DNA from: Anthoceros angustus
Lineage: Eukaryota > Plantae > Anthocerotophyta
Length of the DNA: 64,000 nt
Assembly: GCA_010909165.1 (NCBI GenBank)
Contig: VJWM01000107.1
Coordinates: forward strand, 682,001 to 746,000
Direction: 5' to 3'
Positions 2,961 through 53,400 of this stretch are shown here, piece by piece. The position numbers were made by a program, and so were the translations under genes. Position 1 is the first letter of the stretch. Every line of letters starts with the position of its first letter. The notes under the pieces were generated by a model. The model was not told the origin of the DNA. It did no database searches and was given only the letters and a program-made list of their open reading frames with translations.

Positions 2961-3055
2961 ATTCAATTAAGGCAATCCCTCCTTTGGGTTTAAGGGCCAC
3001 GAGAGTTGCGTTGAGGCCAGGGCTGTTCTAGAAGCAAGGCAACCGGCAAGCCGGC

Positions 3056-10692: not shown

Positions 10693-11164
10693 CCGGCTTC
10701 CCGACCCCTTCCTCTTGACCTTGAGGACTCCCTCCAAGGAGACCACAAGGCTCCCTCCCTTGCTTTCCACCACTCTTGCGGATCCGCCACGATCCGGGCA
10801 ACTTGGTAGTCTTCTCCCTGGGAGGAACGTCAGGCTTACAAAGACCGGATCTGGAACCTCCCAAACCCCGGCCCCAAACACCGAGACTTAGGCCAACATT
10901 GCTTACATTTCATCAAGAGGGCCTCTTATACCCAAGATCACCCACAAAGCTTTCTTGCCAAAAATACCAATCCTCTTAGCCTACCAATCCTAGAGGCCTA
11001 TCTATCAATTCATCCACTATGAGAGGATAAGATTTACCTATAACACATGGGCCTTTAGCTATTTCAGGCCACTTACCCTATTACCTCTCCGGGCCTCCTA
11101 GCCCCATGTTCTCCTCTTGCTCTCCTCCCTCTTGGCTGGTTGGGCAATCTCTCCCATAAAATCT

Positions 11165-16259: not shown

Positions 16260-17760
16260 ACTAGCGGGCTGCCAGGCGATTAGGTGAAGCTCTGAGCTTG
16301 ATCCGCCTGTAGCCGCTGGTACGTGGTGTACGGCGGGATATCTGGCTGGAGGACAAAGTGTTGAGTCCGCCTCTCACCAAAACTGAGGCCCTGAGAGCGA
16401 AATGAGTGTTGTGCAAACCGCGACAGTGATGTTGAGCTGACAGATCCGGATAGGTAGTCCCTTGACCACAGTGTCCGGGAGCTACCAGAAGCAGCGTTTC
16501 AGCGATCCGCAAGTTGAATTGCGGGCGCATGAGCTGGCTCATGGACATCAAGTTCTTTGCCATGGTGGGCACGAAGAGGACGTCTTCCGCAAAGATATGA
16601 GCCATCGTTGAGTTTGAAGGTGGTGTACCTTTGCCTTGTATCTCGCAAGTGGTTACGCCTCGCGTCAGCCTAACATGACCTTGTCACTCCGAGGCAAGTG
16701 TCAAGGTGGTGAACAGACCTCTGTCCTTGCAGATGTGTGAGGTAGCTCCAAAGTCGAGGTACCAACAGCCGTCGTCATTGACGGAGCTCGGCGAGCATGC
16801 GTGAGTATCTTCACTGTGCCTTGATCGTCCTTGACTCGACACTTGCAGCCGGTTTGGGTAACCGGGGCTCACCCGCCTTTTCTTCGGCACTCACGTGCCC
16901 AGTGTCCAGGTATGCCACACCAATTGCAATTACAGGCGTCTAGAGGAGCGTCTCCACGGCCCGACTGGTGGAGAGGTGCTCCTCGGTCTTCCTTTGTCCT
17001 TGGGTGGTTGGCCTCTGCGAGTTGGCTGCTAACACCTTATCCATCTTGTTCTTAGGAACGCCAGATGAGAAGGCTCGACTTTGCTCCTCCTGGAACAACG
17101 CACCGATCACTTCTTCCAAGGTGATGGTCGTTGTTGCACCAGAGGCAGTAGAAGCAGCTCGCAGAGGGCCGTTCTGACTAGTGACAAAGGTTTGGTAGGA
17201 GAGAGGAAGGGTTGTGACGAACTGCCAGCATCTACCTCCGACATCTTCTCTCCAGTCAGCGAGGTGAGCTGGGCTCTAAGGTGTCGGAACCTGCTGGTGT
17301 GCGCTGCCACCTTGTCTCCTTCCTTCATCTTCAAGGCGAAAAACTCTTGTCTAACTGCACAGAGTGTCATTAAGTTTTGGACCTTGTATGTCTTCTCCAA
17401 GTGGTTCCAGATCTCAGTGGCCGAGTTGTAGAACTCAACGTCTGGGACAAGATCTGCATCGAGTCCGCTGATGAGAACTGCTACCGCTATGGCATTGTAC
17501 TGGTCCCACTTGGCAATTTCTGCAGGAGTAGGTGCGGGTGTGGCTGCTGGATCCGGCTTCTTGTATGATCCGTCCACCGTACCCCACACGCCGCGTGCCA
17601 GCAAAGTGGTCTTCATCCTTACGCGCCAGGTGGGGTAGCCATCTCCTTTGAACCTGTCCGTCTCTCTGAGTTCTGAAGTAACTATAGGTGAACTCTTTGT
17701 CGCCAAGTGGACAGGAGGAGGGTGAGGAAGAAGGTTTAAGTTTGGGCTGGTGATTAACAT
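16260..17760 (-). mobile_element. Internally deleted Ty1/copia: gag, zinc knuckle and protease
   Basis: RFKGDGYPTWRVRMK...EIWNHLEKTY, CNWCGIPGHWAREC, WYLDFGATSHIC, VLFVPTMAKNLM; joins directly to a purine tract and LTR at ~16220 with no INT, RT or RNase H. Confidence 0.85.
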
Positions 17761-24800: not shown

Positions 24801-27148
24801 CACTGGTCTAAGTACCACTGTGAATTGCCTAGCATTTGTCTTTGCCGACAAACATGTGGGTGCAAGGACCGGATTAGTATACTCCCGTCCCAACCATGAG
24901 GGTGATGGCGATGGTCGCTTCTTAACCACAACATTGGTTTCGCTTCCTCCTTTCGAGGTAAGCTCGCTAGCTTTTCCTGCATTCACGCTCCCGGTGACTG
25001 TGGATTTTGCACCGCTTGCAAGTCCCCGACTTCTTACTTTTCTTGTTTGCAAGGCCGAGTGGCCTCCTTGCGAGCCGCCACCTCGGACGAACCAGATCCA
25101 CCGCCTCGAGTATGGTCTTGCACCACCTCGCCCACGGTTGGAGCTGCCGCTTGCCAAAGACGCTCGCTTTGTCCTCCTCGTCGCCTCCTCTTCCGTGAGG
25201 GACCCAACAAGTTCTCGCAAATGTTAATTCGGTACTTTGAGGTCGGGCTGATTTGGCCACCGTAATTGGGATGCATGAATTGATGTCACAAAGTGTGACC
25301 ATGACGAGGCAATGATAGCAACAGTACAATGTCGATTTCATCCTTGATGGTTTCCTTGGTAGCATTTTCCAGTTTAGAGACCAAGGTTCTGAAAGTCATT
25401 ATATGTTTTTCCACAGATTCTCCTTCACGCATTTTACATTGCTGAAGGTTGTTGAGGGCTGACAGCTGATTTGCTGAGTTCTTTCCTGCGTACAGCTCCT
25501 CCAGGCGATCCCAGATTTCTGCAGCAGTCTCACAACCAGCAGTTTGCCTCATCATGTCTGCTGTGAGTCCACTTCTAATGAAATACATGGAAGATTCATT
25601 TCTGAGTTCTCGTGCTTCCTTTTGTGCTACAGTTTCACTCTCAGAAGCTGCATCTAAACCTTGTGTGGTTTTCCAGAGTTTTCTGTGTTGAAGTGCGCCT
25701 TTCATGCGCATGACCCAAATATCATACTGACGACCATCAAATCTATCCTTTTCTTTGAACCCTTCCCCACCTACAGATGAGGAGCCTGTATCTCCCATTG
25801 TAAGGGCTTATAAAGGGGTTTAAAGCTACTATCTATTGCCTCAGAGCAGATCTACAGGAGGTGAGCAAGTATGTTAACAGGTCTAATTACTTCATGTAAG
25901 CTAGATGCCTGCTGTGCCTCCTTTTCTGCAATCTGCTCCTTTCTTAATGTGAACCTATTGTAAGTGTAGGTTGCACATGAAGGACAGGAGTTGGGATCAT
26001 CAAAACCATTGTCGCAGTACGCTTGATTGATCTAACCGCAAAGTGCGAAATTCGTGGTTTTTCAACAATTCGCTTTAACAACACATGGATTTTATAATCC
26101 GTGGTACAACGCCCTTAGATCCTCAGAATCCACACTTACGCCAAAGAACACTCTTATTCAGTTTACATAACGCCTATCTACAAATAGGGCGTGAGATTCA
26201 ATTCGAAATAATGTGAAACTGCTTGTGTGGTGTGTGGTGAGGAAACCATTAGGGTTTCCACGTACATCTGCGAGCCTAGGACGCAACTCCGGAGGGTTGG
26301 CTTCGAACTTGCTCACGGGACCAACTAACAAATGTTGAAAGTCCGGGTATAGGGTGGAAACCAGAAATTGTAAGCCTCACGCACTGCAGGCCGCTCTGCC
26401 TTGATTGTGTGTCCACTCCTCGCTTTCTTGAATGCGCTCAACAATGTTTACGTAGTTAGGTTGTCCCCGAGTGGTCGATTGCGTTGGTTGACTCGCTCGG
26501 TCGAGGGCCGCCAGATTTGGCCTCGCTGTGCCATTTTAATGGCTTGTATTCGCCGTTAGAATGCTAAATTTATGCATTCGATTGTTATTTATCAATTTAC
26601 AAAAGCTATTTGCACTATCTAGCGGTGTTCTAGTGAAGTTCTATCGAATTGCTATAGGGAGCAATCAATAGAACTACATTAGAATGCAACTACTAGATTT
26701 GCAAAACAGCAATTTGTAAACAAGCAATTATAAAGAAAACAACCGAAATTTAAGTTCTTGATTTTATTTTGGGTTTCATTTCAAGAAAGCATTCTTAAAC
26801 ATAAAACAACCAAAACGCATGTTTGTGCATATCCCGAAATGCACAATTTGATGTGCATTCTTTAGAATGTAAATGCATCATCATGCTCGATACCATGACG
26901 ATTTATAGAGATAATGCAGATTAATTAAATCAGATAAAATAATTACATCATTGATAATCAAGAAAAGAACCAAAGTGTTTATGAGACTTGGACAACTTAA
27001 CTAAAGCGAAAAGTCATGTCTGTCGCTAAAGGTCGCAACCCTAATGAAAGGGTATATATAACTTAAGCTAAGTTATATGTGTGACTAATAAGCTAACCCT
27101 AGGTTACTTAACATTATGATAACACCCTAAGTACTCATTACTTCATCA
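18860..27148 (-). mobile_element. Full-length Ty1/copia with paired LTRs (26896-27148, 18860-19113) and TSD TAATT
   Basis: PBS TGGTATCGAGC at 26885-26895, purine tract AAGTGGGAG, gag 25290-25798, zinc knuckle, protease WYLD, integrase, RT (CKWVFKLK, YVGDL), RNase H; TAATT at 18855-18859 and 27149-27153. Confidence 0.92.
20640..23925. repeat. Imperfect tandem duplication, unit ~1.64 kb, inside copia RT
   Basis: The RT and late-integrase segment occurs twice, with indel-dominated differences. Confidence 0.9.
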
Positions 27149-28180: not shown

Positions 28181-30607
28181 ACTAGGGTGCTCTAACTTAT
28201 GAAAAAGGCAAAGACAAAAAAGCAGTAATGCCAACTCCGCTCGATGCATACAGATTTTTCATCATTCCGCTATTAGAACAACTGCCGTAAACATAGAGAA
28301 TGACATAAGTCATGTACGCCCTAAGGTTTTTCCGCTACACAGTTTCCATCATCATCATCCATGTTGTCAATATCCGCCTCCTCCTCATATATTATCGACC
28401 CACCCTCCTGGTTCAATGAAGCCATCTCGTTTAGCTTCTCCTTTATAGCCCTTTTGTTGTTGGCGTATAAATGCTTCCGCGTAGTAAGGTTGAAATCATA
28501 GTATAATATTACTGCATCATTTATGTAGATCTCTTGTATATTTTTGGGGTACACGGCCTTTGACCCTGGCCTTGATGACCTGGCCCCGCGGTGCTTGGGC
28601 CCTTGTCCACGGACGATGTGCTCCTCAACATATCGTCCTTCGTAAGTGTCCGTATGTTCCGTCCTATACCAGTGGACTAGCAGACTCAGTCGTAAAGCAT
28701 TAGAGCGTGTTTTGTATCAATCACTTTCCAATGAATCTGTGTGTTTTTTTAGCATCACGTTGGTATGCAAGCATTGGTGAATGTGAACAATATCATCCTC
28801 CAGAGGGTCATCAAACTCATCATCATGAGTGTCAAGCGCATCTCTCGGGATGTCAACATCGTTAAATGCGTTGAGTTATGCGGTTATGGAATGAATGCTA
28901 ACTCCTCCTCCTCCTGCATAATAGGTTCAACTGAGGGAACACGAGAAGCAGGAATGGGAAATGGAGTGAGATAATCATTGCAGCCCTTTGTGCCCTCCAT
29001 CCAGCCCCGAAAAATGCCATCCCCCCGGACATACTCGACTATGTCCCTGAGGACCCCTTCTCCCTGGACCTCGCGGTTTTGCTCAGCTCTCTCTCTACGT
29101 CTTTCTTACGCGGTATGCAGGATGGTGTTTGAGCATCTTCGAGACCTTTTTCTCCCTGAAGACCCATCCAGCAGCTTTCATGCTCTTTTCATAAATTGCT
29201 GACTGGACGGAAGCGCCTCGAATCTCTAAAGTCCTTTCAGCTAGCAGGCGTCTATGGACAAGCACCGAGACTCTGGCGGGTGTCCACTCGCGGTTGGGGA
29301 AGCTTTCATGCGGCTCCTTAGTACTATTGCCTTCCCTTCGCTCCCTCCTCCGGCAACACCTTAGCCCCTACAATTTGTTAGATATATAACACACTAGGGT
29401 GCTCTAACTTATGAAAAGGCAAAGACAAAAGCGTAATGCCAACTCCGCTCGATGCATACAGATTTTTCATCATTCCGCTATTAGAACAACTGCCGTAAAC
29501 ATAGAGAATGACATAAGTCATGTACGCCCTAAGGTTTTTCCGCTACACAGTTTCCATCATCATCATCCATGTTGTCAATATCCGCCTCCTCCTCATCGCT
29601 ATTATCTGACCCACCCTCACTGGCTGGTTCAATGAAGCCACGCATCTCGTTTAGCTTCTCCTTTATAGCCCTTTTGTTGTTGGCGTATAAATGCTTCCGC
29701 GTAGTAAGGTTGAAATCATAGTATAATATTACTGCATCATTTATGTAGATCTCTTGTATATTTTTGGGGTACACGGCCTTTGACCCTGGCCTTGATGACC
29801 TGGCCCCGCGGTGCTTGGGCCCTTGTCCAGACGATGTGCTCCTCAACATATCCTTCGTAAGTGTCCGTATGTTAGTCCTATACGGTGGACTAGCAGACTC
29901 GATCGTAAAGCATTAGGCGTGTTTTGTATCAATCACTTTCCAATGAATACATGTGTTTTTAGCATCACGTTGGTATGCAAGCATTGGTGAATGTGAACAA
30001 TATCATCCTCAGGAGGTCATCAAACTCATCATCATGAGTGTCACCTCTCTGTGGGATGTCAACATCGAGTTAAATGCTGGTTGAGTTGTATGCGGTTATG
30101 GAATGAATGCTAACTCCTCCTCCTCACCGCATAATAGGTTCAACTGAGGGAACACGAGAAGCAGGAATGGGAAATGGAGTGAGATAATCATTGCAGCCCT
30201 TTGTGCCCTCCATCCAGCCCCGAAAAATGCCATCCCCCCGGACATACTCGACTATGTCCCTGAGGACCCCTTCTCCCTGGACCTCGCGGTTTTTGCTCTA
30301 GCTCTCTCATTACGTCTTTCTTACGCGGTAAAATGCAGGATGGTGTTGAGCATCTTGAGACCTTTTCTCCACTGACCCATCCAGCAGCTTTCATGCTCTT
30401 TTCTTTGCCGTGTACGGGAAGCGCCTCATTGAATCTCGAGTCCTTTATTCTTGAGGCTCGTCACTATGGACAAGCACCTGAGACTCTGTGGTGTCCACTC
30501 GCGGTTGGGGAAGCTTTCATGCGGCTCCTTAGCCGTGCTATTGCCCTTCAGTGCCGCTCCCTCCTCCAGCAACACCTTAGCCCCCTACAATTTGTTAGAT
30601 ATATAAC
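28181..30607. repeat. Imperfect tandem duplication, unit ~1.2 kb, including the copia insertion junction
   Basis: 28181-29390 is repeated at 29391-30607; both copies end in CAATT-TGTTAGATATATAAC. Confidence 0.9.
28321..28900 (-). pseudogene. C-terminal remnant of an unidentified, probably transposon-associated protein
   Basis: Continuous frame LVHWYRTEHTDTYEGRYVEE...QEIYINDAVILYYDFNLTTRKHLYANNKRAIKEKL with acidic flanks; second copy at ~29530-30100. Confidence 0.4.
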
Positions 30608-30795
30608 CTGCTAGGGTTAAATATAAATGCTTAGTTAGGATTAGTTACATTTTATATACTTATACTTCCTTGTGTCCTACCTTTTTTTTTAATTCCTTTT
30701 GTTCATTGGTCTTCTCTTCCCTCTTGCATGCTGGCTTGTGATTGTGTTGCGTGCACGAGGGTCCTCGTCATGGTACCAGAGCCTGACGATCGCTA

Positions 30796-31392
30796 TTGAC
30801 CTTTGTGGGCCTTTTGCCATGCGTCGCAAGAAGGAAATCCGAGAGACACACCCACAAATTCATCGTGAAGTACAATGGATTCTCCCAACCCGTGACGGCC
30901 CTTGGAGCCAAGCGTACCTCGGCAATCACGGATCGACTCTGCACATTAGCATGGCGGGGCCCAGAACAAAGGAATATCGGTGAGAGGCGCAATTTCGAAT
31001 TTGATTTTCAGACAACTCCAAGTTTTCAGAATCGACAAATTTATCGCAACAATTCCAGGAATACCAAATTGCAGGAGAAATTGCAAAATTTCGATTCAAT
31101 AGTTTCAGGCCATGACGAAAGTTTTTCTGACAAGTCTGTTCGAGCCACTGCAAAGCTGATTTCTAAACGAGTTGAGATACATATTTCACAACTGTGCTCT
31201 CGACAGGACCTATTTCTGGCAGCATTACAAGATCTGGAGAAACGTCAAGAGCATAGGATCAATCAGTGCAGTTTTGACATCGATCGGGCCAATCACCGTA
31301 TTACAGAATTACTGCACTCGATGGGGATTGCTCCAGCATCAAAGACTGTAATCTGCCCAGGGCATGTTGGCCCCTCTGATCCTGCAACTTGA
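30796..31392 (+). CDS. Extra 198-codon ORF between copia PBS and gag, function unknown
   Basis: Uninterrupted frame immediately after the PBS; coiled-coil-like AALQDLEKRQEHRINQ segment. Confidence 0.4.
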   Translation: MTFVGLLPCVARRKSERHTHKFIVKYNGFSQPVTALGAKRTSAITDRLCTLAWRGPEQRNIGERRNFEFDFQTTPSFQNRQIYRNNSRNTKLQEKLQNFDSIVSGHDESFSDKSVRATAKLISKRVEIHISQLCSRQDLFLAALQDLEKRQEHRINQCSFDIDRANHRITELLHSMGIAPASKTVICPGHVGPSDPAT

Positions 31393-33004
31393 TCCCCCTT
31401 CCACTGCATGGTGGAGGGAGAGCGGTTAGGGATTCTGCATGCGCGCATCCACAATTCCGAGGCGGATCGATTGCGAAGATGCCACAGCGGCCACATCCTC
31501 GGCTGCGATGGCGGTTATGATAGTTATCCAACCTTCCCTGCCACCAGACACACAAAACCTAATTGTCATTTCAGTTAGTTAGGTTTCCATTTCTAGATGA
31601 CTTTCTTTTCAGTTAGGGTATTGTACTCAAAGCAATGAAGATGCTTACCCCTGATTCCCCTATTCCTTAGTCTTTGCAGTAGTAGTTATAGCAGCAGTCC
31701 TCTATGCCTACCTCACAGCAGAAATAGATTAGCACCATGGCTCTCATACCACCTCCTCCACCACTAGGATTACCCGTTCCATCCTTTACAGCTGACCTGA
31801 AGGAGAAGGATCGCTTCAATGGGACCCGGTTCGATATCTAGAAAGTTCTTATGAAATCCACTCTGGTTGCGTGTGGCGTCTGGAACATGGTTGATGGATC
31901 CACACCAGACCCTGGTACACCAGCTAGTCCTGCAACACCAGGAACACTTGTCACATCCGGACAGAAAATGAGATGGGATCAGGCCAATAGTATTGATGTC
32001 GCCCTACTCATTGCTGGTCTGGATGCTGACCTTGTTCCTGAAGTGGAGTTCCTCGACAATGCACACGAGATATGGAGCCAGTTAGAAGGAACGTATAAGA
32101 TACAAAACATGATGACACTTCGTACTGTAAGAGCAAACTTTTGTAACCTTAGGCTCAAGGAAGGTGAGCCTGTTGCTGTCCACATTAGCAAGTTTAGACA
32201 CCTACATGCTCAGTTGGCCGGCCTCGGCAGCCCTGTACAGTGGATGATGTCTCTCAGTTCCTGATCAACCTACCTGCAAGCTTCCAGACATTTTTCACGG
32301 CGCAGAATGTCCCCACTCAGATTCCTGGCCAACTTGTATATGTAGGACAATTTTCCCCTTCCCTTAACGCAATCATTGGAGCTCTATTCTAAGAGGAACA
32401 AGGCCATCAAATTCGTGGACATGGTCGTCACAAGGGAGACAAGACAAACAAGATTTTTTCAACTACCTGGGGAGGTCGAGGTCGAGGTCGAGGAAGAGGC
32501 AGGGGGAGATTCCAGCTTATTCAGTCCACTCCTTGCAATGGCGCATCTTCCTCGACCCTCAAACGGCCAGGTAATTGTAACTGGTGTGGTTTACCAGGGC
32601 ACTGGGCTAGGGAGTGTCAGAAGAAGAAGGCCGGCGAGCCCCAATGTGCTTCCCCTCGTCCCTCAGCAAATGCCACCACACAGCACAGTCATCAGGACAA
32701 ACAGTCCTCAACATCTACAACTTCAGGCAAGCCAGTAGTTAAAATTCTCACTGTCTAGCTAATTGAATACTTTAGCGAGTGCCATAAATTGTTGCAACCT
32801 GGACTCAGGGCAACTGCCTACATCTGCAGAGACGAGTCTCTCTTTTCCAGCTTGACACTTACAGCTATTGCTGAGAAGGTGTATCTGGGTGATGAGAGTG
32901 TCGGGAGTAGTTTTTACAGGTCCTTGGTAGAGGTGTCTGTAAGTTTCCCCTGCATGATGATACTGTGTTAGCTTTACCAGACGTCCTGTATGTGCCCAAG
33001 ATGG

Positions 33005-36000
33005 TGTGGAGTGATTTTCTAAACCAAGTGGTCACAAAGAGGCCACATTTACCCTCTTTATCGTTGTAGACTTGAGATTCGTACCCAAGGGAGTGATTTC
33101 GTGTCAAGACAACCAAAACATAGCCAATCCAACCAAAACACGGACACCAAACATCTAGCGATTCTGAGACGGCTACTACCTAACAACACTCGGACACATG
33201 GCTATCTTAGCCACGCGACCTGTGCACCCAGCAGCGGACCGGTTGCTAACTTAGCAACCACCCTCTATTTCTAGCGGAGGGTCCACCTTGGGATCAGTCG
33301 GCTATTAATAGGGGTGTCAGTCGGGATCCAAGTGGATAAGGCTGACCTCTCTCTCTCTCTCTCTCACTCATCCACAAAGTTAGATCCACCAATCGATTCG
33401 CTCTCATAACTCCCCCCCTCTCTCACTCTTGCGGCATTTCTTGAGACTTCCTTGCCCCTCCCCTCGGCCTTTCAGCTCACCTTCCAGCTCCATCAGACCT
33501 TCCACTCTCAGTCCCTTGGGGTGCCTCTCAGCCTCCACACTCTCCAAGTTTCCCCGGAACTCTCTTCAACTCTCCTTGTTCTCACACCTCACGCCCCATT
33601 CAATCTCCACTTCCACTCCAGCTCCATCAGACCTTACAGACTTCTCCAGTCCCTTGGGGTGCCTCATCCCCCACACTCTCAAGTTTCCCCAGCTCTCTTC
33701 AACTCTCCTTGTTCTCACCTCGCCCCATTCAATCTCCACTTCCGACTCACAGCCTCAGTCCTTACAAGGTTCTCATCCAGACCTTTGACTTCACCAACTC
33801 TCAAAATACTTGTTCACTACCTCGCAATCATTCCATCTCATCCACTCACGGATCTTCAACCTCCACTCACGCTCTCTTCTTCAACACAAACATCACTTCA
33901 GACTTCTCCATCCTTCTTACTCCTCTCAAACAGCCAATCAGCAACTCTCCATGTCCGGCATTCTCCACTTCTCTCACTTCACTTTTCCTCTCATTTTCCA
34001 AACACACAAGCCCCTCCAACTCTTCCCTTCCTTTCCACACACAGGCTCCCGCCTTGTCTTCTCTCCACACCTTGACACTCACGAAAACTTAAACACAAGG
34101 TGAGTACTAGACAAGCTGAGAATGAGTAAAGGAGGGCCTCCCGGCTTCACCTTCCTCTTGACCTTGAGGACTCCCTCCAAGGAGACCACAAGGCTCCCTC
34201 CCTTGCTTTCCACCACTCTTGCGGATCGCCACAGATCTGGGCAACAGTAGTCTTCTCGGCGCGAGGCGGTGCCTTACGGCTGGATCCGGAACCCTCCCAA
34301 ACCCGTGCTCGGCCCCAAACACCGAGACTTAGGCCAACATTGCTTACATTTCATCAAGAGTGCCTCTTATACCCAAGATCACAGCGGCTTGGCGCTTGCC
34401 AAAAATACCAATCGGTCTTAGCCTACCAATCCTAGAGGCCTATCTATTAATTGTCCACTATGAGAGAGGATAAGATTTGATCTATAACACATGGGCCTTT
34501 AGCTATTTGAGCCACTTACCCTATTACCTCTCACAGGCCTCCTAGGCCGCCTAGCCCCATGTTCTCCTCTTGCTCTCCTCCCTCTTGGCTGGTTGGGCAA
34601 TCTCTCCCATAAAATCTCTACCTCCTCAGCTGGACTCCTCTCTCTCTTGTGCTCGCCGCATAGTGCAGTACTCCTCCTCGGTGAGCTCTTGAATCTGGAT
34701 GGGTCGGTGAGAGTTTCCTCCTTAAGAATCCAACCCATAGGTAGGATCCGGTGCCGTCAAGGCATGGATCAAGTACCTCCATGTCCCCCTGTGCCCACAA
34801 CAACATAAACTTTCGGAGACAATCTTCTCTCCAGCCAAGGAGAATCCGGGCACATGGTTATCTTGATAAGCATCCCTCAATCTAATGCACCATTGGGAAG
34901 TTAGACTTCTTAGGCGGTGCTTACCGCTCCCCAGCTGTTGTCCTCCTCACGGTCTTGCCCCTTCTTCCTTGTTGTAGCTCGGTCTTGGAGCTGTTGCTCC
35001 CTTAGCAGTGCAGGTGTTCTTCCTTAGCGGCCGGCGGTTGCTTGCTTAGCAACCTCCTCGGCTGTTGCCAACTCGACAGATTCTTCCATGGAGGCTCCGC
35101 ATCTTCCACGGTGGCTCTCCTTGCAATCCCGGCCCTCTTGGCCTCTTTCCAACCTTTCCTTGCCTCGTCCCTCTCCTTCTTGGCGCCCGAGGCATCCAGC
35201 GTTTCTGAACTTGCATCGAGATGACATTCTGCGGCTCCCCTATGGTGCTTTGTGCGTCCGAGAGCGAACCATGAGGGTTTCACGATCCTTGGTCTTCACG
35301 CAACTCTTCTCGGACCTTCCTTAATTCCTTCCATGCTACCTAGGCGTCCCTCCAAGACCTCCTTCTCCTGCTTCATTCCTGGAGCTCCTTGCTCCCCTGT
35401 TGTTCCCCTGCTGCTGTAAACCTAACAAAGAGGACGAGCTATCGGTCCTCCATCTCACCTAGTGCGTGCCATATGAGACCGTCTTGTAGGGTGATGTTAG
35501 GCCCCAAACCTCGGGATGGGTTCCCTCCTTCCTATCTGGCAGACTCTCCCCGCGACCACTTGGGGTATACTTGAGGTCACCTTGAGCAGTGGTGACTTTC
35601 TCGGGGTCACGGTGCCCAAGGTTGGGCGATTCCTCCTGTTGACTGTGGCTTCCCGCCACGGGCTCCTGAGCCAGTGCTGCTCTGGCCTTTCCTTTATCAC
35701 CTTACATCCGGGTGAGTTCCAGTCGTGCTCTTGTGGCTCTAGGAGTGGTTGGAGTCCCTGTTGCTCGGCCGACCTCTCTTGGTGCTGTTGGGGTCTTAGC
35801 AACTCCGGTTGCTTTGTTAGCATGGTGATGCCTTAGCAACCGCCACATTCCTCTTCATGGACACTTGGACTTCTCATCTTCACTCCCGGTGCCCGGAGAT
35901 GGCCTCTTCCTCCTCCTCTTTGGGCTTCCTTCTTTCAAACACCGGCCTCCAGGCATGGAAGGCTGAGACCATCTCTATCCCCTCCAGCAACTTGGCATGG

Positions 36001-37915
36001 TCAAAACGTGGATTAAGAAGGGAGATAGAGCTGAGGGACTGGGTGATGGTAGGGTCAAGTGGTCCCTCTCCACGCATTGTGTCATAGAACATCCTGGCCC
36101 AATCTATCTTGGACCCTCTCACCACCTCATAGAGAAAGACAAGAAAATGGTCAGCAATGTGCTCTAGCTTCTTAGTGAGTGAGCACAGGATCCACTGGCT
36201 AATCCGGCCATTTCGGTCTAACTTGTTGGTGACCCACCATTCTCCACCCTAGACAATGTGGGAGCAATGGCGACTTGTGCCTCCTGCACTTTTGGGAGAT
36301 GGCTTCGAAAGGATCAATGATTATTCCACCACATTCCTCTTGCTCTCATAGACACTGGAACAACTGAATATTCCAGCTGCGGGGGTTGGTTCTCGTGTTG
36401 CCTTCCCCTGTGGCCTTCTCCCTCATGTGTCTGCATTCCAAACCAATTAAGGCTCTTGTAGCACCACTTTTTGTCCATGAAGGACAAGTGATGCTTAGCC
36501 ACCAAGGAACCCCTTTCACTCTCCGATTGCCCCATGTTGGGCCATTGGGCGATGGTAATGGCCTCAATGGCCACGGAGTGTTCTTCTTAGGTCCCATGCT
36601 CCTTGTCTGTGGTGAGCCTAGAGTTCTGGTAAAGTGTCCGGCTACACGCCATTCGGACTTCCCACAAGCCTTACATGCGGTGTCGCCTTTTTGGTCGACT
36701 CCTCACTCGAAATTCTTCCAACCTGCGGTGAAGGATCCCCTAGGGGTAACTTCTCGCTCCTTGTACCCATCTCCACGATGGCGAGTGCCACGTGATTTTC
36801 TCTGGAATCCACCAACCTCCCTCCTACATCACAATTTGTCTCGCGGCCTTGCCCCTCGGCCGGTATCTCCGTGTCTCCACGACTGGGCGCGTCGACCACC
36901 CACGACACAGAAACCTGACACCACCTCGAATTGGAACCCTACTCCAATTCCACCATCAACATGCACTTTGCTCCGCTCAAGCCAATTCGCCTTCGGCCTC
37001 AAATATGTGAGTGCGGGGAGATCACCGCAACCGTGGTTAGGCGGTGACCCCACAGTGCGCCGCCTCCGCCCTTAATCCGCTCCCTTAGGGTGCGTGCCTG
37101 GTCGCACCCTACCTCGTGCACGCTCCCCTTCCTTCTTGGCAATTCCTCGGCCCCCTCGCCCCCGCTGCCTTCTAGTTCTTTCTGATGCCGGCCCGGCGCA
37201 CGCCTTGACCTTCTCCAGGCTGCTCGGCCCGATTATTCCCCCACCATTGGGATTTCTGATCGTGTCGGCTGCTGCTCCCTGCTTGCCCGCGCGCCCTGGG
37301 CTCCTCCACGGTCTTCGTTCCGGCTCCTCTCGCCGTAGCCTTGGATCTGCTGCCGTCTCCACGCCTCCTGCCCTTTCCATCCGCATCCGCCCCGGACTGC
37401 CATTCCACCCGATTCGGCCCTCTTGTGCGCTCGTCGCTGCACCTTCGTGACTCATTGCGGCCGCCTTCCTCCGCCTCCGTCCAGTCACGCTCGAGCTTGA
37501 GGTGTGGCGCCGCCTTGATCCCTTTCGCAAATATTCCTTGTCCCTTCCGCTTGGAAATAATAGGACCCCCCGTTACTTCCGTTCGGGTATTTCCAATGAT
37601 TTCGCTCAATTAGGTTTTCCGATTTATCGGAAAATAACTCCGACTTGGTTGCTACCATAGCAAGCGAGCTCCGTCGATTCTTTGTCATAGCAACAGTCCT
37701 GTTATGGCCCTAGCATGCGTTAACCGGCGGCCAACCCTCCAAGGTTACATCCGGGATCGGGACTAGACTCTCTTCCTCCTACTAGGCTCTAGTAGACTTT
37801 TCTTATTTCCTAACCTACTTCACATCCCAACTCCACACGATTCTCACAACTTAACCACAAAACAAAAAAAACACTCCTTTTCGAGGGGGGTCTGAGTACC
37901 CATGTGGTCACCACA
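33005..37915. mobile_element. 4,911-bp TG...CA unit with solo-LTR hallmarks, inserted in the copia protease-integrase linker
   Basis: TGTGG...CCACA ends; flanks GATGG / TATGG; removing it restores VLYVPKMAKNLM; no internal PBS, purine tract or LTR pair recognised. Confidence 0.85.
34618..36597 (-). pseudogene. Accessory ORF inside the 4.9-kb unit (MGPKK...), ~660 codons, frameshifted
   Basis: ATG at 36597; LTKKLEHIADHFLVFLYEVVRGSKIDWARMFYDTMR; colinear with the 11165-13137 copy. Confidence 0.7.
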
Positions 37916-40900
37916 TATGGCAAAGAACCTTATGTCACTAAGTAGACTCATGAAAATGAAGGATCTAGTCCTTACCATCTCAGAAGATACATGTTGTTTC
38001 TCTAGACATAGTGCCCCTGCCACTTGCATCTTCAAAGCCTCGCTTGATTCAGAACTATATCGCCTGGATATTTCTTGCATTCCAAGACAACACTCATACT
38101 CTACAACCATTGGCGCCTCATGTACACTGTGAACAGTCTGGCATGCGCCTTAGCCATGCTAATAGAACTAAAGCGATTGATATCTCTGGCGAGGTCAAGA
38201 ACCTCTTCCACGTTGCTTAAAGGATCTACCAATTTGTGAAGTGTGTACCCTTGCAAAGCAGCGGGAGACTCCCTTTCCAACGGCCCTGCACATCGATCAT
38301 CGTCAGTGCTGGATCTTGTCCATGCAGACATCTCAGGCAGATTGCAAGTATCTTCTCTTGGTGGAGCGAAATATCATCTTACCTTGACTGATGATTATAG
38401 TCGCTGTACATGGACTTATCAAATGCAAATTAAGAGTGATACCTGCCCAATATTCAAGGAGTGGCTCCTTATGACTCAGCGACAGATGAGTTGCCTACTG
38501 AAGCTCTTTCACACGGATAATGGTGGAGAGTTCACTAGTCATCCTTTCGCTGAGTTCTTGCAAGGAGAAGGAATCATTCATCAGCTAATTGTACCCTACA
38601 CACAACAGCAGAATGGGTAGCAGAGAGGAAGAATCAAACTCTCATGGGCATGACTCGCTCGATGCTGCTATGTCGGGGCTACCCTCTCCCTATTGGGCAG
38701 AGGCTGTTGTTACAGCCACATATATACTGAATCGGCTTACCTCCAACTCCATTCCGGGCAAAACTCCTTATGAAATGTTCTGGGGTCGTAAACCAAGTGT
38801 TCTAGATCTACACCTTCACACCTTTGGTTCCCGAGCATTTGCTTACATACCTGCTGAAAAGAGGCTCTTCCTCAAAAACAAAGCGAAGGAGCCGGCCGGC
38901 CGGCGCCTTCCCTTGGATTTGTTGTCTTTGTGTGTTGGAAACGGGTTTTCATGATAACTACTCGTTGGAAAACGGTCGACCTTTCTTGAAAACGAGGCAA
39001 AACGCATATTTCGGGACTGTGTGGAATGTGCTAAGAGGGTTTCCATGTCACAGAAGGGGGTTCGGATATTCACCCCCTTCGAAAGATATCGTGTTAACAT
39101 CATTACGCTAGAGATGTCAAAGCTAGAAATATCGTCAAGCCTATTATGTTCATACTGACGCCAATACAGCCGACATACTCACTAAGTCCCTTCCCAAACA
39201 CAAACACTACATACACCTTGACTGCTTGGGACTACTAGACTATTCCAGCTATCTCTAACTTGTAGGACCTAGAGTCCCCTACTCAGCTGACCTCCTGTTC
39301 CCGTCGTCTGCCCCTTGCCCTAACCTTTTTGTGTTCAGTGGGAGATGTCAATGTTCTGTGATAGGTTTTAGCCCCAAGCAGCAAACTCAAGACTGAATAG
39401 TAATTTCGATTCTTACCCCTGCCGATACGTATGTTGGGCAGGATACCCTTGTTCTTCCCTAATCTGCAGGTGTGATACATGACGCAAGTATTAAGATGCG
39501 CAGCGGCACAGCCCCCTCACTGGATGAAGCTCAACCTACTCTAGCTAGTCGTGAGAAGGCTGCAACAAATCTGCTATCAGTATGGAGTTACTGGACAGTC
39601 TCACCTTCAATCTTGTTTCCTCCATATAGTGCTATGATTTCGTTTTCCCTTGCCACCATATCCCTTAGCTCCTCTGTCCTCCTTTGCGTTCTCCAGAGTA
39701 TCTTCTTTGAAACTTCGTCATACTTCTTCTACGACTCCCGCAGCTCCTTCATGAGTTCATCCAGGCTTCGCGCCTCCTGGTCCTCCCTACCCTTCAGCTC
39801 CCGTCTCCTGCCTTGGGTTCAGGTTCAGCAATCTGTTCCTCTCTTCCAGCCTCTCCCTGCTGCTCAAGCCAGAGTTCTTGGACCGCACCATGGTGAAGCA
39901 TGAAGGAACTAAGATTGCTGTGATACAGACCAGCTAGAAGAGGCGAGGACTGTGAAGATGGAGGAGGCGTAATCCTTCCTCATCTCCTCTCTTAAGTCAG
40001 GGAGCTGTACAGATATGGCGAACATAGCCCTTACATTCTGACAGCGCAACTGAAGATTGACCCTTTTCAATGCTTATCGCTTGATTCGTATTTAACCCGT
40101 CGAGGTTAAGTGGGAGTGTTAGATATATAACCTGCTAGGGTTAAATATAAATGCTTAGTTAGGATTAGTTACATTTTACATACTTATACTTCCTTGTGTG
40201 CTACCTTTTTAATTCCTTTTGTTCATTGGTCTTCTCTTCCCTCTTGCATGCTGGCTTGTGATTGTGCTGCGTGCACGAGGGTCCTCGTAACAATTTGGCA
40301 TTGCTACTCCGAGGGGTTGTGAGTCAGTGGTGTTTGACATGCAGGCATGGCTTGACACCCACCCGGATTGGGTTGTTTTACAGGTGGATGTTGAAAACGC
40401 CGTCAATACCATTTCGAGGAGCGTCATCATCGAGGAGCTCAGGGACGCTGGTGGTGTCTTGGAGAGCCTTATACCTTTTGTCTGGTGCTTCTACGGGACA
40501 TCTTCTAATCTTTATTATCAATACAGGAACATGTCTTCGGGATTTGCTGTTTCTGTCTTAGAATCAGCCACAGGTACCAGTCAAGGTGATCGATCCTCTA
40601 GGCGGTGCCCTCTTTGCCATCGCGCACTACAAGGCCCTTTCGGTACACTTCCTTGCGTGGTCTTCCGCCGCGGGCGACTCTCACATCCTTGGGCCAGGAG
40701 ACAAGGTTCAGGAGGCCTTCTAGCTCTTCTCGCATGAGATTTCTTTGGTTGGCTTAAAAGTAAAGCTCTCTAAGTGTCGCGTTTGGTCCTCATTGGGTAT
40801 CCTCCTCACTTTGCAGTTCCCTGCTGGGGAGATTGCTCCGGCCTTGGGTCTACGGATTTTGGGGGTCCCCTTCGGCCCCCCTCACTTTATTGGGAGCTTC

Positions 40901-45121: not shown

Positions 45122-46168
45122 ATGGCTCAAGGAGCTGCACCTATGGAATACAGACATTTAGGAACAACAGGTCTGAAGGTGAGCCAATTAGGATATGGCG
45201 CTTGGGTGAGCTTTGGAAATCAAGTAGACGCAGCTGCAGCTAAAGGAATTTTGGGAAAATGTAGAGAATTAGGAGTAAACTTCTTTGATAATGCTGAAGT
45301 TTATGCGGGTGGAAAAGCTGAAGAAATGATGGGGAAAGCCATTAAAGACCTAGGTTGGAAACGTTCTGATTTAGTGCTCTCTAGCAAAATATTTTGGGGA
45401 GGAACTGGTCCCAATGATAGAGGGCTCTCGAGGAAGCATATTATTGAAGGTGTGAAAGGCTCTTTAAAGAGACTTGATTTAGAATATTTAGATCTTATTT
45501 ACGCTCATAGGCCCGATAATAGCACTCCAATAGAGGAGACTGTGAGAGCATTCAATTGGGTGCTAGACCATGGTCTTGCTTTTTACTGGGGTACAAGTGA
45601 GTGGTCAGCTCAACAAATTACAGAAGCTTGGGAAGTTGCTAAAAGGCTAGATTTAGTTGGACCATCAATGGAACAACCTGAATATAACCTATTTTCTCGA
45701 GACAAAGTAGAAGTGGAATACTTACCTCTTTATGGGCACTATGGCCTAGGCTTGACCACATGGAGCCCTTTAGCTTCAGGTGTGTTGACAGGAAAATACA
45801 CAAAGGGCACAATTCCTCCAAACACTCGTTTTTCTCTTGAGAACTATAAGAACTTGGCTAGCAGATCTTTGGTAGACGAGATTCTCAGCAAAGTGGAGCA
45901 ACTCAAACCCATTGCAAAACAATTGGGCATCTCAATGGCTCAAATGTGCATTGCTTGGTGTGCCAGTAATCCAGATGTGAGTGCTATTATTACAGGAGCT
46001 ACCAATGAAACCCAAGTTGTAGAGAATTTGAAGTCTTTGGAACATCTTCCACTAATGACTCCCGAAGTGTTGGAGAAGATTGAGAATGTTGTGCAAAGCA
46101 AACCTCGTCGCCCTGACCAATATCGACGGCCATCTGCTCTAGGAGTCAAATCATCCGGTCAATTCTAG
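45122..46168 (+). CDS. KAB1: Voltage-gated K+ channel beta subunit (aldo-keto reductase family), single exon
   Basis: 348-aa intact ORF with GLKVSQLGYGAWVSFG, FFDNAEVY, GLSRKHIIEG, FYWGTSEW, EQPEYNL, TWSPLASGVLTGKY; closely matches plant KAB1. Confidence 0.95.
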   Translation: MAQGAAPMEYRHLGTTGLKVSQLGYGAWVSFGNQVDAAAAKGILGKCRELGVNFFDNAEVYAGGKAEEMMGKAIKDLGWKRSDLVLSSKIFWGGTGPNDRGLSRKHIIEGVKGSLKRLDLEYLDLIYAHRPDNSTPIEETVRAFNWVLDHGLAFYWGTSEWSAQQITEAWEVAKRLDLVGPSMEQPEYNLFSRDKVEVEYLPLYGHYGLGLTTWSPLASGVLTGKYTKGTIPPNTRFSLENYKNLASRSLVDEILSKVEQLKPIAKQLGISMAQMCIAWCASNPDVSAIITGATNETQVVENLKSLEHLPLMTPEVLEKIENVVQSKPRRPDQYRRPSALGVKSSGQF

Positions 46169-47494: not shown

Positions 47495-50400
47495 ATGCAT
47501 TCCCCGATTCTGTCGCCCACAAGTGATTCATCTTCGCATGTTGATGGGCTTGAGGATGCTGCCGACGTAGAAGCTTATATCCGCCATCGTCGTAGGGCGG
47601 GTGCAGTGCAGCCAGACCAGAGCGCTGGTTCTGGCGAGACAGGTATGCTTGCGACCGGCTGCGGCGGCAGCTGGAGGTTGTGTTGTACGGTGGCTGAGGA
47701 CGGCGTGCATTGTTTGTACTCCAATTTGTGGCTGCAGGTGGGTGGATATGCAGCTACTGCGGTTGGGTCCCTTCTAGTCATCTTGTCAGTTCCAGTCAGA
47801 GGCTGAAGCACGAGGAGCATTGCGAGGGGGCGGCCGGTGTCCCTTTGTGGGTGGGAGAGGAGGGAATCAGTGAAGGTGGGTTTGGCAAGTTCAGGAATTT
47901 GAAGCTACGATGCAATTTTGTCCGAGTCCTGTTTTTGTCATTACTTCTTGTTGTTGAGGAGCTTGTTGCTTAGGAGGAGAACGTGCTTTGTGTCTCTGCA
48001 GATGTCCGGCCGGAGCTAGATATCAAGGGTAGTAACATGGAGGACAGCTCCGGAGATCCTCTCACCCACAACAGTGATGGGGAACATGGTGATGTCCAAG
48101 TGGAACTTCACTTCAGGAATGCTTATCACCCTGAGAGGCGCCTGTATGTGGATGAACACTACAAGCGTGAAGGTTCTGAGCATGATCCGGCTGCAGATGT
48201 CGAGCCGGAGCTAGATATCGAGGGTAGTAATATGGAGGACAGCCCCGGGCATCTGCTGTCCCCCACTAAAGATGGGAAACATGGTGATGTCCATGTGGAA
48301 CTTGGAATCAGGAATACTTATCATCCTGGGAGGCGCCTGTATGTGGATGAACACCACGAGCGTGAAGGTTCTGAGCATGATCCGGCTGCAGATGTCGAGC
48401 CGGAGCTAGATATCGAGGGTAGTAATATGGAGGACAGCCCCGGGCATCTGCCGTCCCCCACTACAGATGGGAAACATGGTGATGTCCATGTGGAACTTGG
48501 AATCAGGAATACGTATCACCCTGGGAGGCGCCTGTATGTGGATGAACACCACGAGCGTGAAGGTTCTGAGCATGATCCGGCTGCAGATGTCGAGCCGGAG
48601 CTAGAAATCGAGGGTAGCAATATGGAGGACAGCTCCGGGCATCTGTTGCCCCCCAATGGTGATGGGAAACGTGGTGATGTCCAAGTGGAACTTCACTTCA
48701 GGAATACGTATCACCCTGGGAGGCGGCAGTATCTGGATGAACACGACAAGCGTGAAGGTTCTGAGCATGATCCGGCTGCAGATGTCGAGCCGGAGCTAGA
48801 AATCGAGGGTAGTAATATGGAGGACAGCTCCGGGCATCTGCTGCCCCCCAATGGTGATGGGAAACGTGGTGATGTCCAAGTGGAACTTCACTTCAGGAAT
48901 ACGTATCACCCTGGGAGGCGGCAGTATCTGGATGAACACGACAAGCGTGAAGGTTCTGAGCATGATCCGGCTGCAGATGTCGAGCCGGAGCCAGATATCG
49001 AGGGTAGTAATATGGAGGACAGCTCCGGGCATCTGCTGCCCCCCAATGGTGATGGGAAACGTGGTGATGTCCAAATGGAACTTCACTTCAGGAATACGTA
49101 TCACCCTGGGAGGCGCCAGTATCTGGATGAACACGACAAGCATGAAGGCTCTGAGCATGATCCGGCCGCGGTAACCGTTTCATCTCCATCATCGCCTCAT
49201 TTTTCGTCATCGTCGTCATCTTCGTCCTCCTCGTCCTCGTCCTCGTCCTCGTCTATAAGTGGACATGACTTTAAAGGAAGCGCACATGGGGAAACGTGGG
49301 CTCACGGCATTTCGACTGCCGAGCATGTTGGCGAACAGGATGACACACGAGGTGATCAGGAATTGCAGCTTTCAGAGCACGAAGTTGAGCCGATTGCAGC
49401 AGAGCCACCGTGTGAGCTGCCGCCAGAGGAGGCTGAGTTTGACTTGGTTCCTGAGGGATCCGATTCTACTGATGCAACAGACCCTCTTGCAGAGGAAGCA
49501 GTACCAGAGCCAGCGGAGGATGAGACAGCTGGTGACGATGAACCACAAATTCCACAGGTATTTCAAGTGGAAGCGGGCACCACTCCTCCTGGTGGCGCCG
49601 TCGATCAGCCCACAGGGTTGGAACAAAGGGAGGATGGTGAGCTGAAAGCTGAAAGTCCTGACAAGGGACATGTTAGTGGTACCCCCTTGAGGAACTCCGC
49701 CGAAGATGATTCTTCCTACATCGTGGAAAGCCCTCGGGATCACCCGAGCTGGACGGATGAAGCCAGCTCCTCAAGAGATGTCGAAGCATATGAGGTGGAG
49801 AGGGTCATTCGGACTCAAAGAACCCACGACCTCATATGTCCCTTCTGCAGGCACAATGTGACTCACCGAGTTATCCTTCGCAAGCGGAAGAGGTTTTCTC
49901 GAGTTTCCCAGGACACCTGGGTGCAGGAATATGATTCTGGCTCAGCTCAAGAAGAAGAAGAACCCCCAGCGCAGGTTCCAGAGCCACCTGAGGCTGACAA
50001 GGCAAGCTTCTGGGGATGTCTATCCTGCTTCACCATCTTCATACCCCGATGTAAGTCCTCCTACTGCCCGTGTGTCCGTGCTGCAACGTCTTTCGGAAGA
50101 TGGCATGTAAACTACCAACCTCATTGCATGCAACAGGGGGGCAGGCGGTAGGCACAGAGCAGCCGGTTGATAGTACAAACGCATCTAGAACTTCGTCGGC
50201 CTGCCTTCCTCTCTTATTTCCCCCTTTCAAATGGAGATCCACTGATGCTCTTCCAGGTGAGCGACTATTGAAGCGCACTCAGAGTCCAGGCGCCCTTGTA
50301 GCCTTTCTAACTTCAAAAATGATCAAACAGAGCCCGGAGCGGATTCGGTTGGCCAGGAGGATGTTCGTGAGGCTGTGACTGATGTTGTTGCCAATGCCCC

Positions 50401-53400
50401 TGAAGGTGAAAGGGAAAATACTTCCTGCCTGAGTTTCCTCCCGGCCACCCTGACAAGTTTTGACCTTCCTGAAGATGTCGGAAGGAAGCGTGAAAAAGGT
50501 AGGAGCCTGTGTGCTGGTTACTCTCTCCCCAAGCTTGGGGTTCAGACTTCAGCGTATGGTTGGTTACTGCAAACTTTAGCTTTGCAGTACCTTCCCTGGA
50601 TTCGTCTGAGCAATGCTGACTTACTCGATGGAGACATAAGATACTGAAACCCTCAGTCGTACTGTGGGAAGTCGCCCCTGCAGAAGTTCCACCATCTGAG
50701 GTGGACGATGGCGAAAGGGCGTCGTGGTTTGGCTGTCTTCCAGCTACTCTGACAAGCCTCGACTTACCAGTACGCACTCCACCAGAACGCACTCCACCAG
50801 AACGAACTCAGGAGCCACAACAGGAAGCTCCCTTTGTTAGTATTGAAGTTTGTCCGAAACCTGGGGAACCGAAAAGTGAAATCGAGGAGGTTGTGGAGTC
50901 CCCTGCCCATATCACTCCGGTGGTGGTTGTCGTTGAGGAAGGGAAGCAGGCATCATGTCTGAGCTGCCTTCCATCTACATTCACGAGCCTGGACCTTCCT
51001 CCTCAAGTCGATGTCCACAACACGTTTGAGTACAGAGGTACCTGGGTGTCCGTGGCCGTTTTATCTGCTAATTCTGGCATGGTTTGCGAGACTTTTGCCT
51101 AGGACTGCTGTGAAGGATTGTGTCACTGTGCCTAGACTACGCTGCAGCTCCAAAATGCTGGTACTGGATAGGGTTACAGTGTAGTGATGTTTTAGAAGTA
51201 TGCAGGGATCTCACCATTAACTCCGCGAGGTCCTGTTTTTTGCAGATACTTCGAGGGAGTATGTTGAAGTGGAGAAAGCCTCCTGTTTGAGCTGCCTACC
51301 TGCTACTTTACTAAGCTCGGACCTTCCTCCTCCAGTGTTGAACAGAGACCTACCTCTACCTGCCAGTAAGTGTGAAATTAAGACAGTTCTGCTGCGAGTT
51401 TTCTGTGCAATAGCTTTCTCCTTTCGCACTGTTGTGTTTTTTTAGACTTTTGACTCGTTGTTATGCAGACACTCCAGAAGAGCAGGTAGTAGTGGAGAAG
51501 GTTTCTTGCTTAAGCTGCCTTCCAGCTACCCTGACAAGCTGGGATGTCCCACCTGAAGGTAAACAGCGGAGACAGTTTGGAACTTATTCTTAGACTAGCT
51601 TTAGCGTCTATTTAAGTCTGTCTGTTTATGGCAGAGCCTGAACTTGTGGGAGTCTATGTCCATCAACCAAGTGACGCTGATGGAGGCAGGGTTTCCTGCT
51701 TGAGCTGCCTTCCAGCCACTTTAACAAGCTTGGACCTTCCGTCCCCACGGCAGCAGGAGCTACGACCAGGTCAGCTTAACAGGGCAAATTTGAGAGGATG
51801 TCTTTTCTAGATTAATGCGAGGAGCCAAAGACAGGCTGGTAGTCTGGTACATGCCGTGCATCTCGAATATTAACCTGACGCATCACTGTCTTTCTGTGCA
51901 GTGGAGGTGCCATCTGTTGAAGAAAATGTCAGTTGTCTGGATTGCCTCCCCTCTACTCTCAAAAGCTTTGGTCCGCCTGCCTCGTGGAAACCAGATGGTG
52001 GGTTACGTTGAAAGCTGACGCTTTACATACAGTGTTCTTGGCCTTGGTCACAGGCATCGCTCACTCTGTACAGTCGTGTAATTCAGTCATGTGTTTGAAT
52101 GTGTGCCTTCAGATTGGCCACTGCTCCCAGTGCATCCTGTGGAGGAAAATGATTGCTGCGGAGGTAGTTGTTTCAGTTTCCTGCCTCCCACCTTCACAAG
52201 GCTTGATATTGTTCCGACTAAGCCAGGCGTACCAGGTGAACACATGAGAAGCATGTTGCAATGAGGTCATTCAGGGAAGATGATGTGTTGATCGAATCAA
52301 AGATTGTTACATAAGAATGCTGCGTGGTTTGTATGAATCAAAAGGAAAGAGAAGTCTCCAGGTTGGTTCAACATAAATTCATTTATAATTTTGACCTGCC
52401 ATGCTTGGAATCAAGATGCGGGTGTAATGGAATAAAAGTCTGTAACTGCTCCCAAGGCATGACTGATCGTCCCTGCATTCAGGGATGAGTGTTTGAATAG
52501 GCTTAGTGGGCTCAGGGACGATGTGAAGTTATGACCTGCTTGGACAATTCAGAAAATCTGAAACTGCAAGATTGTCACTTTGTTCGTTCGTGGAACATCG
52601 TTGCAGAGAGGCCTGGTCCTGACCGTGATGGAAAGGTTGTAGCAACAGTAGTGCCACAGCCTGAAGGGGAAGCATCCTCGTCGATGGTACCAAGAGACAG
52701 GTTTAAAGGTAAGAAGGGCTCTGGGAAGGGCAAGGAACTGTGGGGACGTATACAGGCAGGTATGGTGAGTTCCGGGCAGGATCCAGTAGACTTCTGGACT
52801 TCAGAAGCAAAAGGCAATCTTGCTGCAAGGTGGCCAACTCAATGGAAACCTCCATCCGCGATCACTACATGTGAGAGTGCTTCTTTGATGTTTACTTTCT
52901 CTTGTCTTTTACCCCCTTGTCTTTCACAAAGCAATGCATGGTCGATTGGGAAGTGGAAGAATGAAATGGGACTAATCACAAGGTCCTCGATGCGCAGTTG
53001 GGAACGAACCACCGGCTTGTGAGCAGATATCTTTCAAACCTCCTCAGACTATCTCCATCTCCCAAACTGTGGCAGTTCCTGTGGCAGTTCCTGTAGCAGT
53101 CCCTGTGGCAGTCCCTGTGGCAGTCCCTGTAGCAGTTCCTGTGAGCGAGCCATCTGAGGAGGCCGCCTTTAGAAAGCAAGTACTGTGCAGTTGCTTCCCC
53201 ATCTCGTGCACTTGCCTCCCAACGCCAAGTTTCTCATGGTTTTCACCATCTCCAGGTTCTTTCAGACAGCCCCGTGAGCTGCAAGGTTGTGCGCACTTGC
53301 TGTATGTGTCTCACTGTGTGCTTATGCTTCTTGCAGATTACGGGAGCAAGGACCTTCGACTGCCACTCATACCAAAGACAACAGTTGTTGTGAGGCCCGA

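Follow-up and report, generated by a model that had tools for sequence, protein, structure and literature searches.

A 4.9-kb solo-LTR-like unit with the remnant of an accessory gene in the Anthoceros angustus genome

A precise insertion in a copia pol gene

We analysed a 64-kb window of the Anthoceros angustus genome (64,000 nucleotides; positions 682,001 to 746,000 of contig VJWM01000107.1, assembly GCA_010909165.1), and focused on a 4,911-bp unit at 33005-37915 that resembles a solo long terminal repeat (LTR) and that carries the remnant of an accessory gene. The setting is a stack of nested plant retrotransposons, plus a few genes. The minus strand is taken as the sense strand of the unit, this being the direction of the gene remnant. 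The unit lies within a copia element, as follows.

30593-40288 (+): host copia element, with the unit nested in its pol gene
33000-33004 (no strand): left target-site duplication (TSD), GATGG
33005-37915 (-): 4,911-bp unit, TGTGG…CCACA
37916-37920 (no strand): right TSD, TATGG, which matches the left one at four of five positions

The termini of the unit, TGTGG at 33005-33009 and CCACA at 37911-37915, form a 5-bp inverted repeat. When position 33004 was fused to position 37921, a single unbroken copia frame was obtained, in which …LPDVLYVPKM is followed at the join by AKNLMSLSRLMK…, and the frame across the rejoined site reads …FPLHDDTVLALPDVLYVPKMAKNLMSLSRLMKMKDLVLTISEDTCCF… / …LPDVLYVPKMAKNLMSLSRLMKMKDL…. 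The host element itself has LTR-like ends (30593-30768 and 40117-40288) that are 96% identical, a primer-binding site (PBS) of the initiator-methionine tRNA (iMet) type at 30771 after the short LTR, gag at 31851-32261 and an integrase core from 38243. Taken together, the TG…CA ends, the TSD and the restored copia frame identify the unit as a genuine, precise, integrase-type insertion in the copia pol gene, and chance is excluded.

Within the unit, no Pfam gag or pol domain was present in any tested piece, and no iMet-type PBS was found. Terminal direct repeats were likewise absent, as local alignment of the two ends scored no better than shuffles. The initial annotation of this DNA had described the same termini, a near-perfect 5-bp TSD, restoration of the host copia frame on removal of the unit, and the lack of internal gag/pol, PBS or LTR pair, all of which were borne out by our analysis.

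Layout of the unit and state of its gene

Self-comparison of the window identified a second copy of the unit (copy 2). The layout of the unit itself (copy 1) is given here in sense orientation.

9692-16070 (-): copy 2, 6,379 bp, ~88% identical to the unit
37558-37915 (-): sense-5' terminal 358 bp of the unit, common to copy 2 at 88% identity
36601-37557 (-): module of ~1 kb that precedes the ATG, in which copy 1 and copy 2 have unrelated sequences
34618-36597 (-): accessory gene remnant, ATG at 36597-36595 (MGPKKNT…), with many frameshifts and stops
33400-34100 (-): region beyond the gene remnant in the sense direction, rich in purines and with loose repeats, in which 33483-33638 resembles 33617-33766
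33301-33310 (-): TATA-like TATTAATAG, read from the sequence ~300 bp before the sense-3' end, which might mark the boundary between U3 and R

Homology between the two copies restarts 3 nt ahead of the ATG, and no integrase remnants were found in the part of the unit upstream of the ATG. The sense strand of the unit is 61% purine, and the region downstream of the gene, where a relic polypurine tract (PPT) and an inner LTR start were sought, is purine-rich throughout. Reading for motifs alone, we saw no TATA-like motif near the opposite end of the unit.

The initial annotation had placed a ~660-codon minus-strand open reading frame (ORF) in the unit. The tract concerned extends from 36597 to about 34618, its ~660 codons being counted as far as the stop codon of the longest C-terminal piece of copy 2. 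This frame is not open. Taken over 34510-36597 in three frames, the copy 1 tract contains 19-29 stops per frame, and its longest open run is 122 codons. The longest ORF listed for the minus strand of the unit is 152 aa at most, and the longest stop-free run on that strand, of 166 codons, precedes the ATG. The tract of copy 2 is no less broken, barring one 236-codon and one 125-codon piece; in one copy 2 segment the initial 125 codons, counted from the ATG, are free of stops in the frame with similarity to an ORF found behind a gypsy integrase elsewhere in the window (see below). It should be noted that ORF length is little informative in this unit, because the base skew opens the opposite strand too, and the plus strand also has long stop-free runs, for example of 229 aa and 207 aa. 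The idea that a consensus would recover one intact ORF fared no better, as a majority path through three copies, computed over the first 1.26 kb, did not open the frame beyond what each copy shows by itself. As assembled, each window copy is a pseudogene from which no protein product is possible.

Kinship with an ORF behind a gypsy integrase

Near the start of the window, a fragment of a Ty3/gypsy element is followed by an ORF related to the tract of the unit.

1970-3030 (+): Ty3/gypsy integrase fragment with H2C2 zinc-binding domain, rve core and SH3-like tail; Pfam confirms H2C2 and rve
3057-4306 (+): accessory gene homologue, a 417-codon frame with a MAPKKT start, directly after the integrase

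The ORF begins ~30 bp past the SH3-like end of the integrase, on the same strand, and stops within the frame are its only defects, three of them at 3173, 3608 and 3908 and a fourth probably just before 3635. It is the sole homologue of the tract. The N-terminal 125-142 codons of copy 2 matched the plus-strand frame at 3041-3412 with a score of 43.9 bits (E 2e-8; 30% identity over 124 aa), and four additional matches between the tract and 3057-4306 were colinear, including the motifs …LVFL(Y/H)…RG…DW and …LSPF(L/I)(I/L)H…. The top score in a control with shuffled queries (n=100) was 25.8 bits, which the real matches of 43.9 and 33 bits exceed. Both accessory frames open with Met-Ala/Gly-Pro-Lys-Lys. 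At the DNA level, the self-comparison of the window found no similarity between the tract and 3057-4306.

These alignments indicate that the tract of the unit probably descends from a sense-strand gypsy accessory gene, and kinship with a sense-strand ORF behind an integrase argues for the minus strand as the unit's own sense. Protein-level conservation between diverged elements, as seen for the additional ORFs (aORFs) of plant LTR retrotransposons, was found here as ~30% colinear identity; a frame open in most copies of the family was not found among the three window copies, in which assembly noise is possible. The earlier suggestion of a link to a gypsy accessory gene is supported by the colinearity of the tract with an ORF behind a gypsy integrase. 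An intact gene is contained in none of the three copies.

Further copies and relatives of the unit

In addition to copy 2, the window contains two partial relatives of the unit.

7822-8844 (-): partial third copy with the same unit end, within a 1.9-kb tandem segmental duplication (6922-8844 resembling 8831-10710)
1180-1346 (+): end of a diverged relative of the unit (…CCACA at 1346), in opposite orientation to the unit

Flanking sequence and the start of the unit make up the tandem duplication in which the third copy lies. All three unit starts are identical over their first 130 bases, as are both unit ends over their last 17, in agreement with the initial annotation, which had noted a second copy with identical ends. 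Copy 2 has no TSD, contains an internal duplication of ~1.5 kb (11886-13280/13418-14776) and differs over ~1 kb (14659-15706) that is unrelated to the corresponding part of copy 1 (36601-37557). The internal duplication is the sole cause of the extra length, as copy 2 without it measures 4,847 bp, compared to 4,911 bp for copy 1. The gene remnant of copy 2 begins MAPKKTT at 13137.

A 168-bp sequence stands directly before copy 2 (plus two bases, AT) and again directly after it. The sites of this repeat are 7654-7821, 9522-9691 and 16070-16213; two of the copies show 100% identity outside a gap of 22-24 bp, and the missing piece is one arm of a 20-bp perfect palindrome. The surroundings of copy 2 also include TTAA on the outside, the filler AT before the unit, and GGTCAC microhomology where the unit ends and the repeat starts. 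The junction between copy 2 and the 168-bp repeat looks like the product of a repair- or replication-type duplication, and not of an integrase.

The diverged relative at 1180-1346 abuts a minus-strand integrase fragment (1385-1601). Taken as 1113-1601 (-), this fragment (…STAYHPNTNGSTKRVN…YNNTVQSSTGYTPFQ) continues as a single open frame into a diverged copy of the terminal 165 bp of the unit, and ~40 bp lie between the integrase fragment and the diverged unit end near 1346.

Sequence quality in the repeats

Over 3 kb, copy 1 and copy 2 are separated by 143 gap runs versus 125 substitutions; the differences are mainly indels of 1-2 bp, and transitions are about as numerous as transversions. 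Since indels dominate, the ratio of non-synonymous to synonymous substitution (dN/dS) between window copies would be meaningless. The repeat-rich parts of the window also contain four adjacent tandem duplications of 1.2-1.9 kb and 87-92% identity, in which indels of 1-2 bp again make up most of the differences and the numbers of transitions and transversions are similar.

7162-8844/9032-10710: tandem duplication
11886-13280/13418-14776: tandem duplication
20639-22280/22272-23935: tandem duplication
28180-29400/29392-30617: tandem duplication

These duplications may be artefacts of poorly corrected long reads or of gap filling. In contrast, 195-bp coding repeats at 47996-49166 vary by substitution with almost no indels, and a 348-codon host gene is intact. 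The indel pattern resembles that of repeats read with long reads and then poorly corrected, and assembly noise may add to the breakage of the gene remnant. Noise is not the whole explanation: where 1.25 kb is present three times, one copy 2 segment resembles copy 1 more closely than it does its tandem neighbour, a frameshift is common to copy 1 and this segment, and the majority path is not open.

The accessory protein

A Pfam scan of 20 stop-free pieces of the tract and its homologue returned nothing above noise. The motif …LVFLYEVVRGSKIDW… pointed to PF20167, a putative plant transposon protein domain, and this lead was rejected, as pieces 35883-36248 (-) and 3176-3607 (+) gave no match to the family at E up to 1. 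A word-index protein search with the 142-aa N-terminal piece found no match in an index that spans proteins of 78-248 aa only. A full HMMER search with the 125-aa N-terminal piece against 1.84 billion representative proteins found no real relative; the single match, to a repetitive 3,454-aa bacterial-type protein, was rejected as a sum of weak matches. The ESM Atlas gave only generic helical-repeat neighbours for the 144-aa domain, with low recognition, and the AlphaFold2 model of this domain, made without an alignment, was all-helical and unusable (predicted local distance difference test score, pLDDT, 43). We also considered an Env-like ORF of the Athila type, which is ruled out by the lack of a hydrophobic segment: the peak 19-residue Kyte-Doolittle mean in any piece was 0.96. 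By these searches the accessory protein is an orphan, and its translations suggest that an N-terminal domain of helices is followed by a basic middle part of low complexity and by a tail that is charged and resembles a coiled coil.

Interpretation of the unit

On balance, we favour the view that the unit is a solo LTR from a Ty3/gypsy-related family with giant LTRs (~4.9 kb), with a decayed accessory gene in its U3. A solo LTR is the best fit because of the TG…CA ends, the 5-bp TSD, the precise excision, the lack of an internal LTR pair and the occurrence of the unit in multiple copies with fixed ends. The initial annotation had reached the same reading, with which the ends, the TSD, the excision and the fixed-end family agree and the lack of a TSD at copy 2 does not. 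A DNA transposon was ruled out by the absence of a transposase, the inverted repeat of merely 5 bp at the ends and the 5-bp TSD. Scans of metagenomes for the unit terminus returned no match.

Several observations weigh against a solo LTR with a gene in U3. No pair of units was found around PBS-gag-pol-PPT within the 64-kb window. Copy 2 is without a 5-bp TSD (its flanks, CTCAT and GGGTC, lie inside the 168-bp direct repeat), and neither of its flanks fits a PBS or PPT on either strand. The LTR is oriented solely by gene direction and the TATA-like motif. As for the gene, it is open in none of the three window copies, and the number of frame switches needed along the majority path is within the range of shuffled sequences. 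Copy 1 and one copy 2 segment also have a common frameshift after …KKWCY, given which the source copy may have been broken already.

Alternatively, the unit might be the LTR of a non-autonomous LARD-like family and the gene-like tract an isolated relic, already defunct in the master copy; the LTR would then be effectively non-coding and gene-bearing in appearance only. We consider this unlikely, while recognizing that the shared …KKWCY frameshift fits it, as do the heavy frameshifting of all three copies (15-23 private out-of-frame indels per 1.25 kb), the failure of majority voting to reopen the frame and an indel density that is similar within and outside the tract. However, 125 codons stay open from the ATG in the copy 2 segment, in the frame of the ORF behind the integrase; the homology between copies restarts at the ATG, suggesting a module boundary; and the indel-rich differences are perhaps partly technical.

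It is a good deal less probable that the unit is not an LTR, but an internally deleted element (5' LTR start, accessory gene and 3' LTR) or another integrase-mobilized unit that multiplied in this form. The related ORF at 3057-4306 is internal, right after the integrase and not obviously in an LTR, and the ~1-kb segment before the ATG differs between copies, as a junction product might. Yet the start of the LTR should recur where the 3' LTR begins, and neither terminus is repeated internally in either copy; a one-off product of internal deletion is unlikely because the LTR start would then occur twice and because two insertions at separate sites have the same ends and layout. We judge it similarly improbable that the protein similarity is an effect of composition and that the unit is an ordinary non-coding long LTR. 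The base skew does produce long stop-free runs on both strands, most individual matches fall within the score range of the shuffled queries, and neither a Pfam family nor a real relative among 1.84 billion proteins was found. Such an effect is difficult to reconcile with the 43.9-bit and 33-bit matches above the shuffled maximum of 25.8 bits, with five colinear matches between frames that both start with Met-Ala/Gly-Pro-Lys-Lys, or with a partner ORF in the known position of gypsy accessory genes.

Returning to the solo-LTR reading, the unit would have been left behind by recombination of both LTRs of an element inserted in the copia pol gene. In minus-strand order, it would consist of 358 conserved bases, the variable ~1-kb module, the ~660-codon MAPKK gene, the purine-rich repeats and the TATA-like box, whose position ~300 bp from the end would fit a long U3 followed by a short R-U5. 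Plus-strand priming may have moved upstream of the accessory gene, whereby U3 would have taken in the gene. The gene would then be copied into both LTRs at each reverse transcription, and LTR-LTR recombination would leave one copy. The position of the TATA-like box would put the start of the genomic RNA downstream of the gene. In that event the gene would either depend on a promoter of its own within the variable 1-kb module or be expressed from the 3' LTR part of the full-length RNA.

We regard the idea of a gene inside an LTR as plausible. The fuller proposal, that a gypsy lineage shifted a sense accessory gene into U3 and that every LTR and solo LTR is thereby a dispersed copy of a protein gene in a promoter-bearing LTR, is tentative and may well prove incorrect. 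With comparable reserve, we suggest that the window might capture both states, the gene being internal after the integrase at 3057-4306 and within the LTR at 33005-37915.

Comparison with known systems

Very long LTRs are found in plant Ty3/gypsy elements, such as the LARD/Sukkula-type LTRs of ~4.5 kb in barley, and are described as non-coding. The unit is like solo LTRs of this type in its TG…CA ends, 5-bp TSD, length of several kb, lack of gag/pol and nested position in a retrotransposon. Unlike the non-coding LARD/Sukkula-type LTRs, it holds the remnant of an accessory gene.

The aORFs of plant LTR retrotransposons, including those of Retand, are placed in the internal region by a review (PMC7264820) and by the Retand paper (PMC11963269). 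The gene of the unit resembles these aORFs as a supplementary gene beside pol that is specific to its family and has no known function. The difference lies in location: the gene of the unit sits within an LTR-like block, between TG and CA, whereas the ORF at 3057-4306 has the position of an aORF. Word searches of the texts of PMC7264820 and PMC11963269 did not bring up any ORF located in an LTR, and mouse mammary tumour virus (MMTV) was the sole case that a full-text phrase search on LTR-borne ORFs returned. The superantigen gene of MMTV, sag, is a protein gene in U3, and hence in both proviral LTRs, which is the same layout as proposed here and is not known from other systems. MMTV is a vertebrate retrovirus and its protein is unrelated to that of the unit, making this an analogy of layout only.

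If confirmed genome-wide, an LTR-borne accessory gene would differ from the internal aORFs known in plants. Were giant LTRs to hold the gene, the gene dose per element would double, and the gene would outlive LTR-LTR recombination, the commonest route of element deletion. Thousands of solo LTRs could then be protein-coding loci, or loci that generate small interfering RNAs, and the family would provide a clean natural case of shifting LTR boundaries. For annotation, we advise caution, as 'genes' of several kb predicted in the Anthoceros angustus genome may be LTRs. The message of the copy at 33005-37915 itself is modest, as it is a dead remnant as assembled; the added value of the window is the accessory gene in both positions within one window.

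Other features of the window

An intact, intronless gene of 348 codons for a K+-channel beta-subunit/aldo-keto reductase lies among the transposons at 45122-46168 (+), and is perhaps a retrocopy. Its protein is 85% identical to an assembly-derived protein, 74-76% to proteins of liverworts (Calypogeia, Riccia) and Sphagnum and 72-73% to those of Selaginella, with lower values for most seed plants, as befits a bryophyte-grade host; an identical protein was absent from the collection searched. A VIT-family gene at 47983-54201 (+) has a long first exon with six 195-bp coding repeats that vary by substitution only, and the tail of its VIT domain is encoded at 53683-54201. Two more copia gag genes were located on the minus strand, at 17107-17760 and 25286-25798. 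A pair of 255-bp direct repeats (18860-19113/26896-27148), 98% identical and 8 kb apart, may represent the LTRs of a minus-strand copia element, and an iMet-type PBS is present at 18166.

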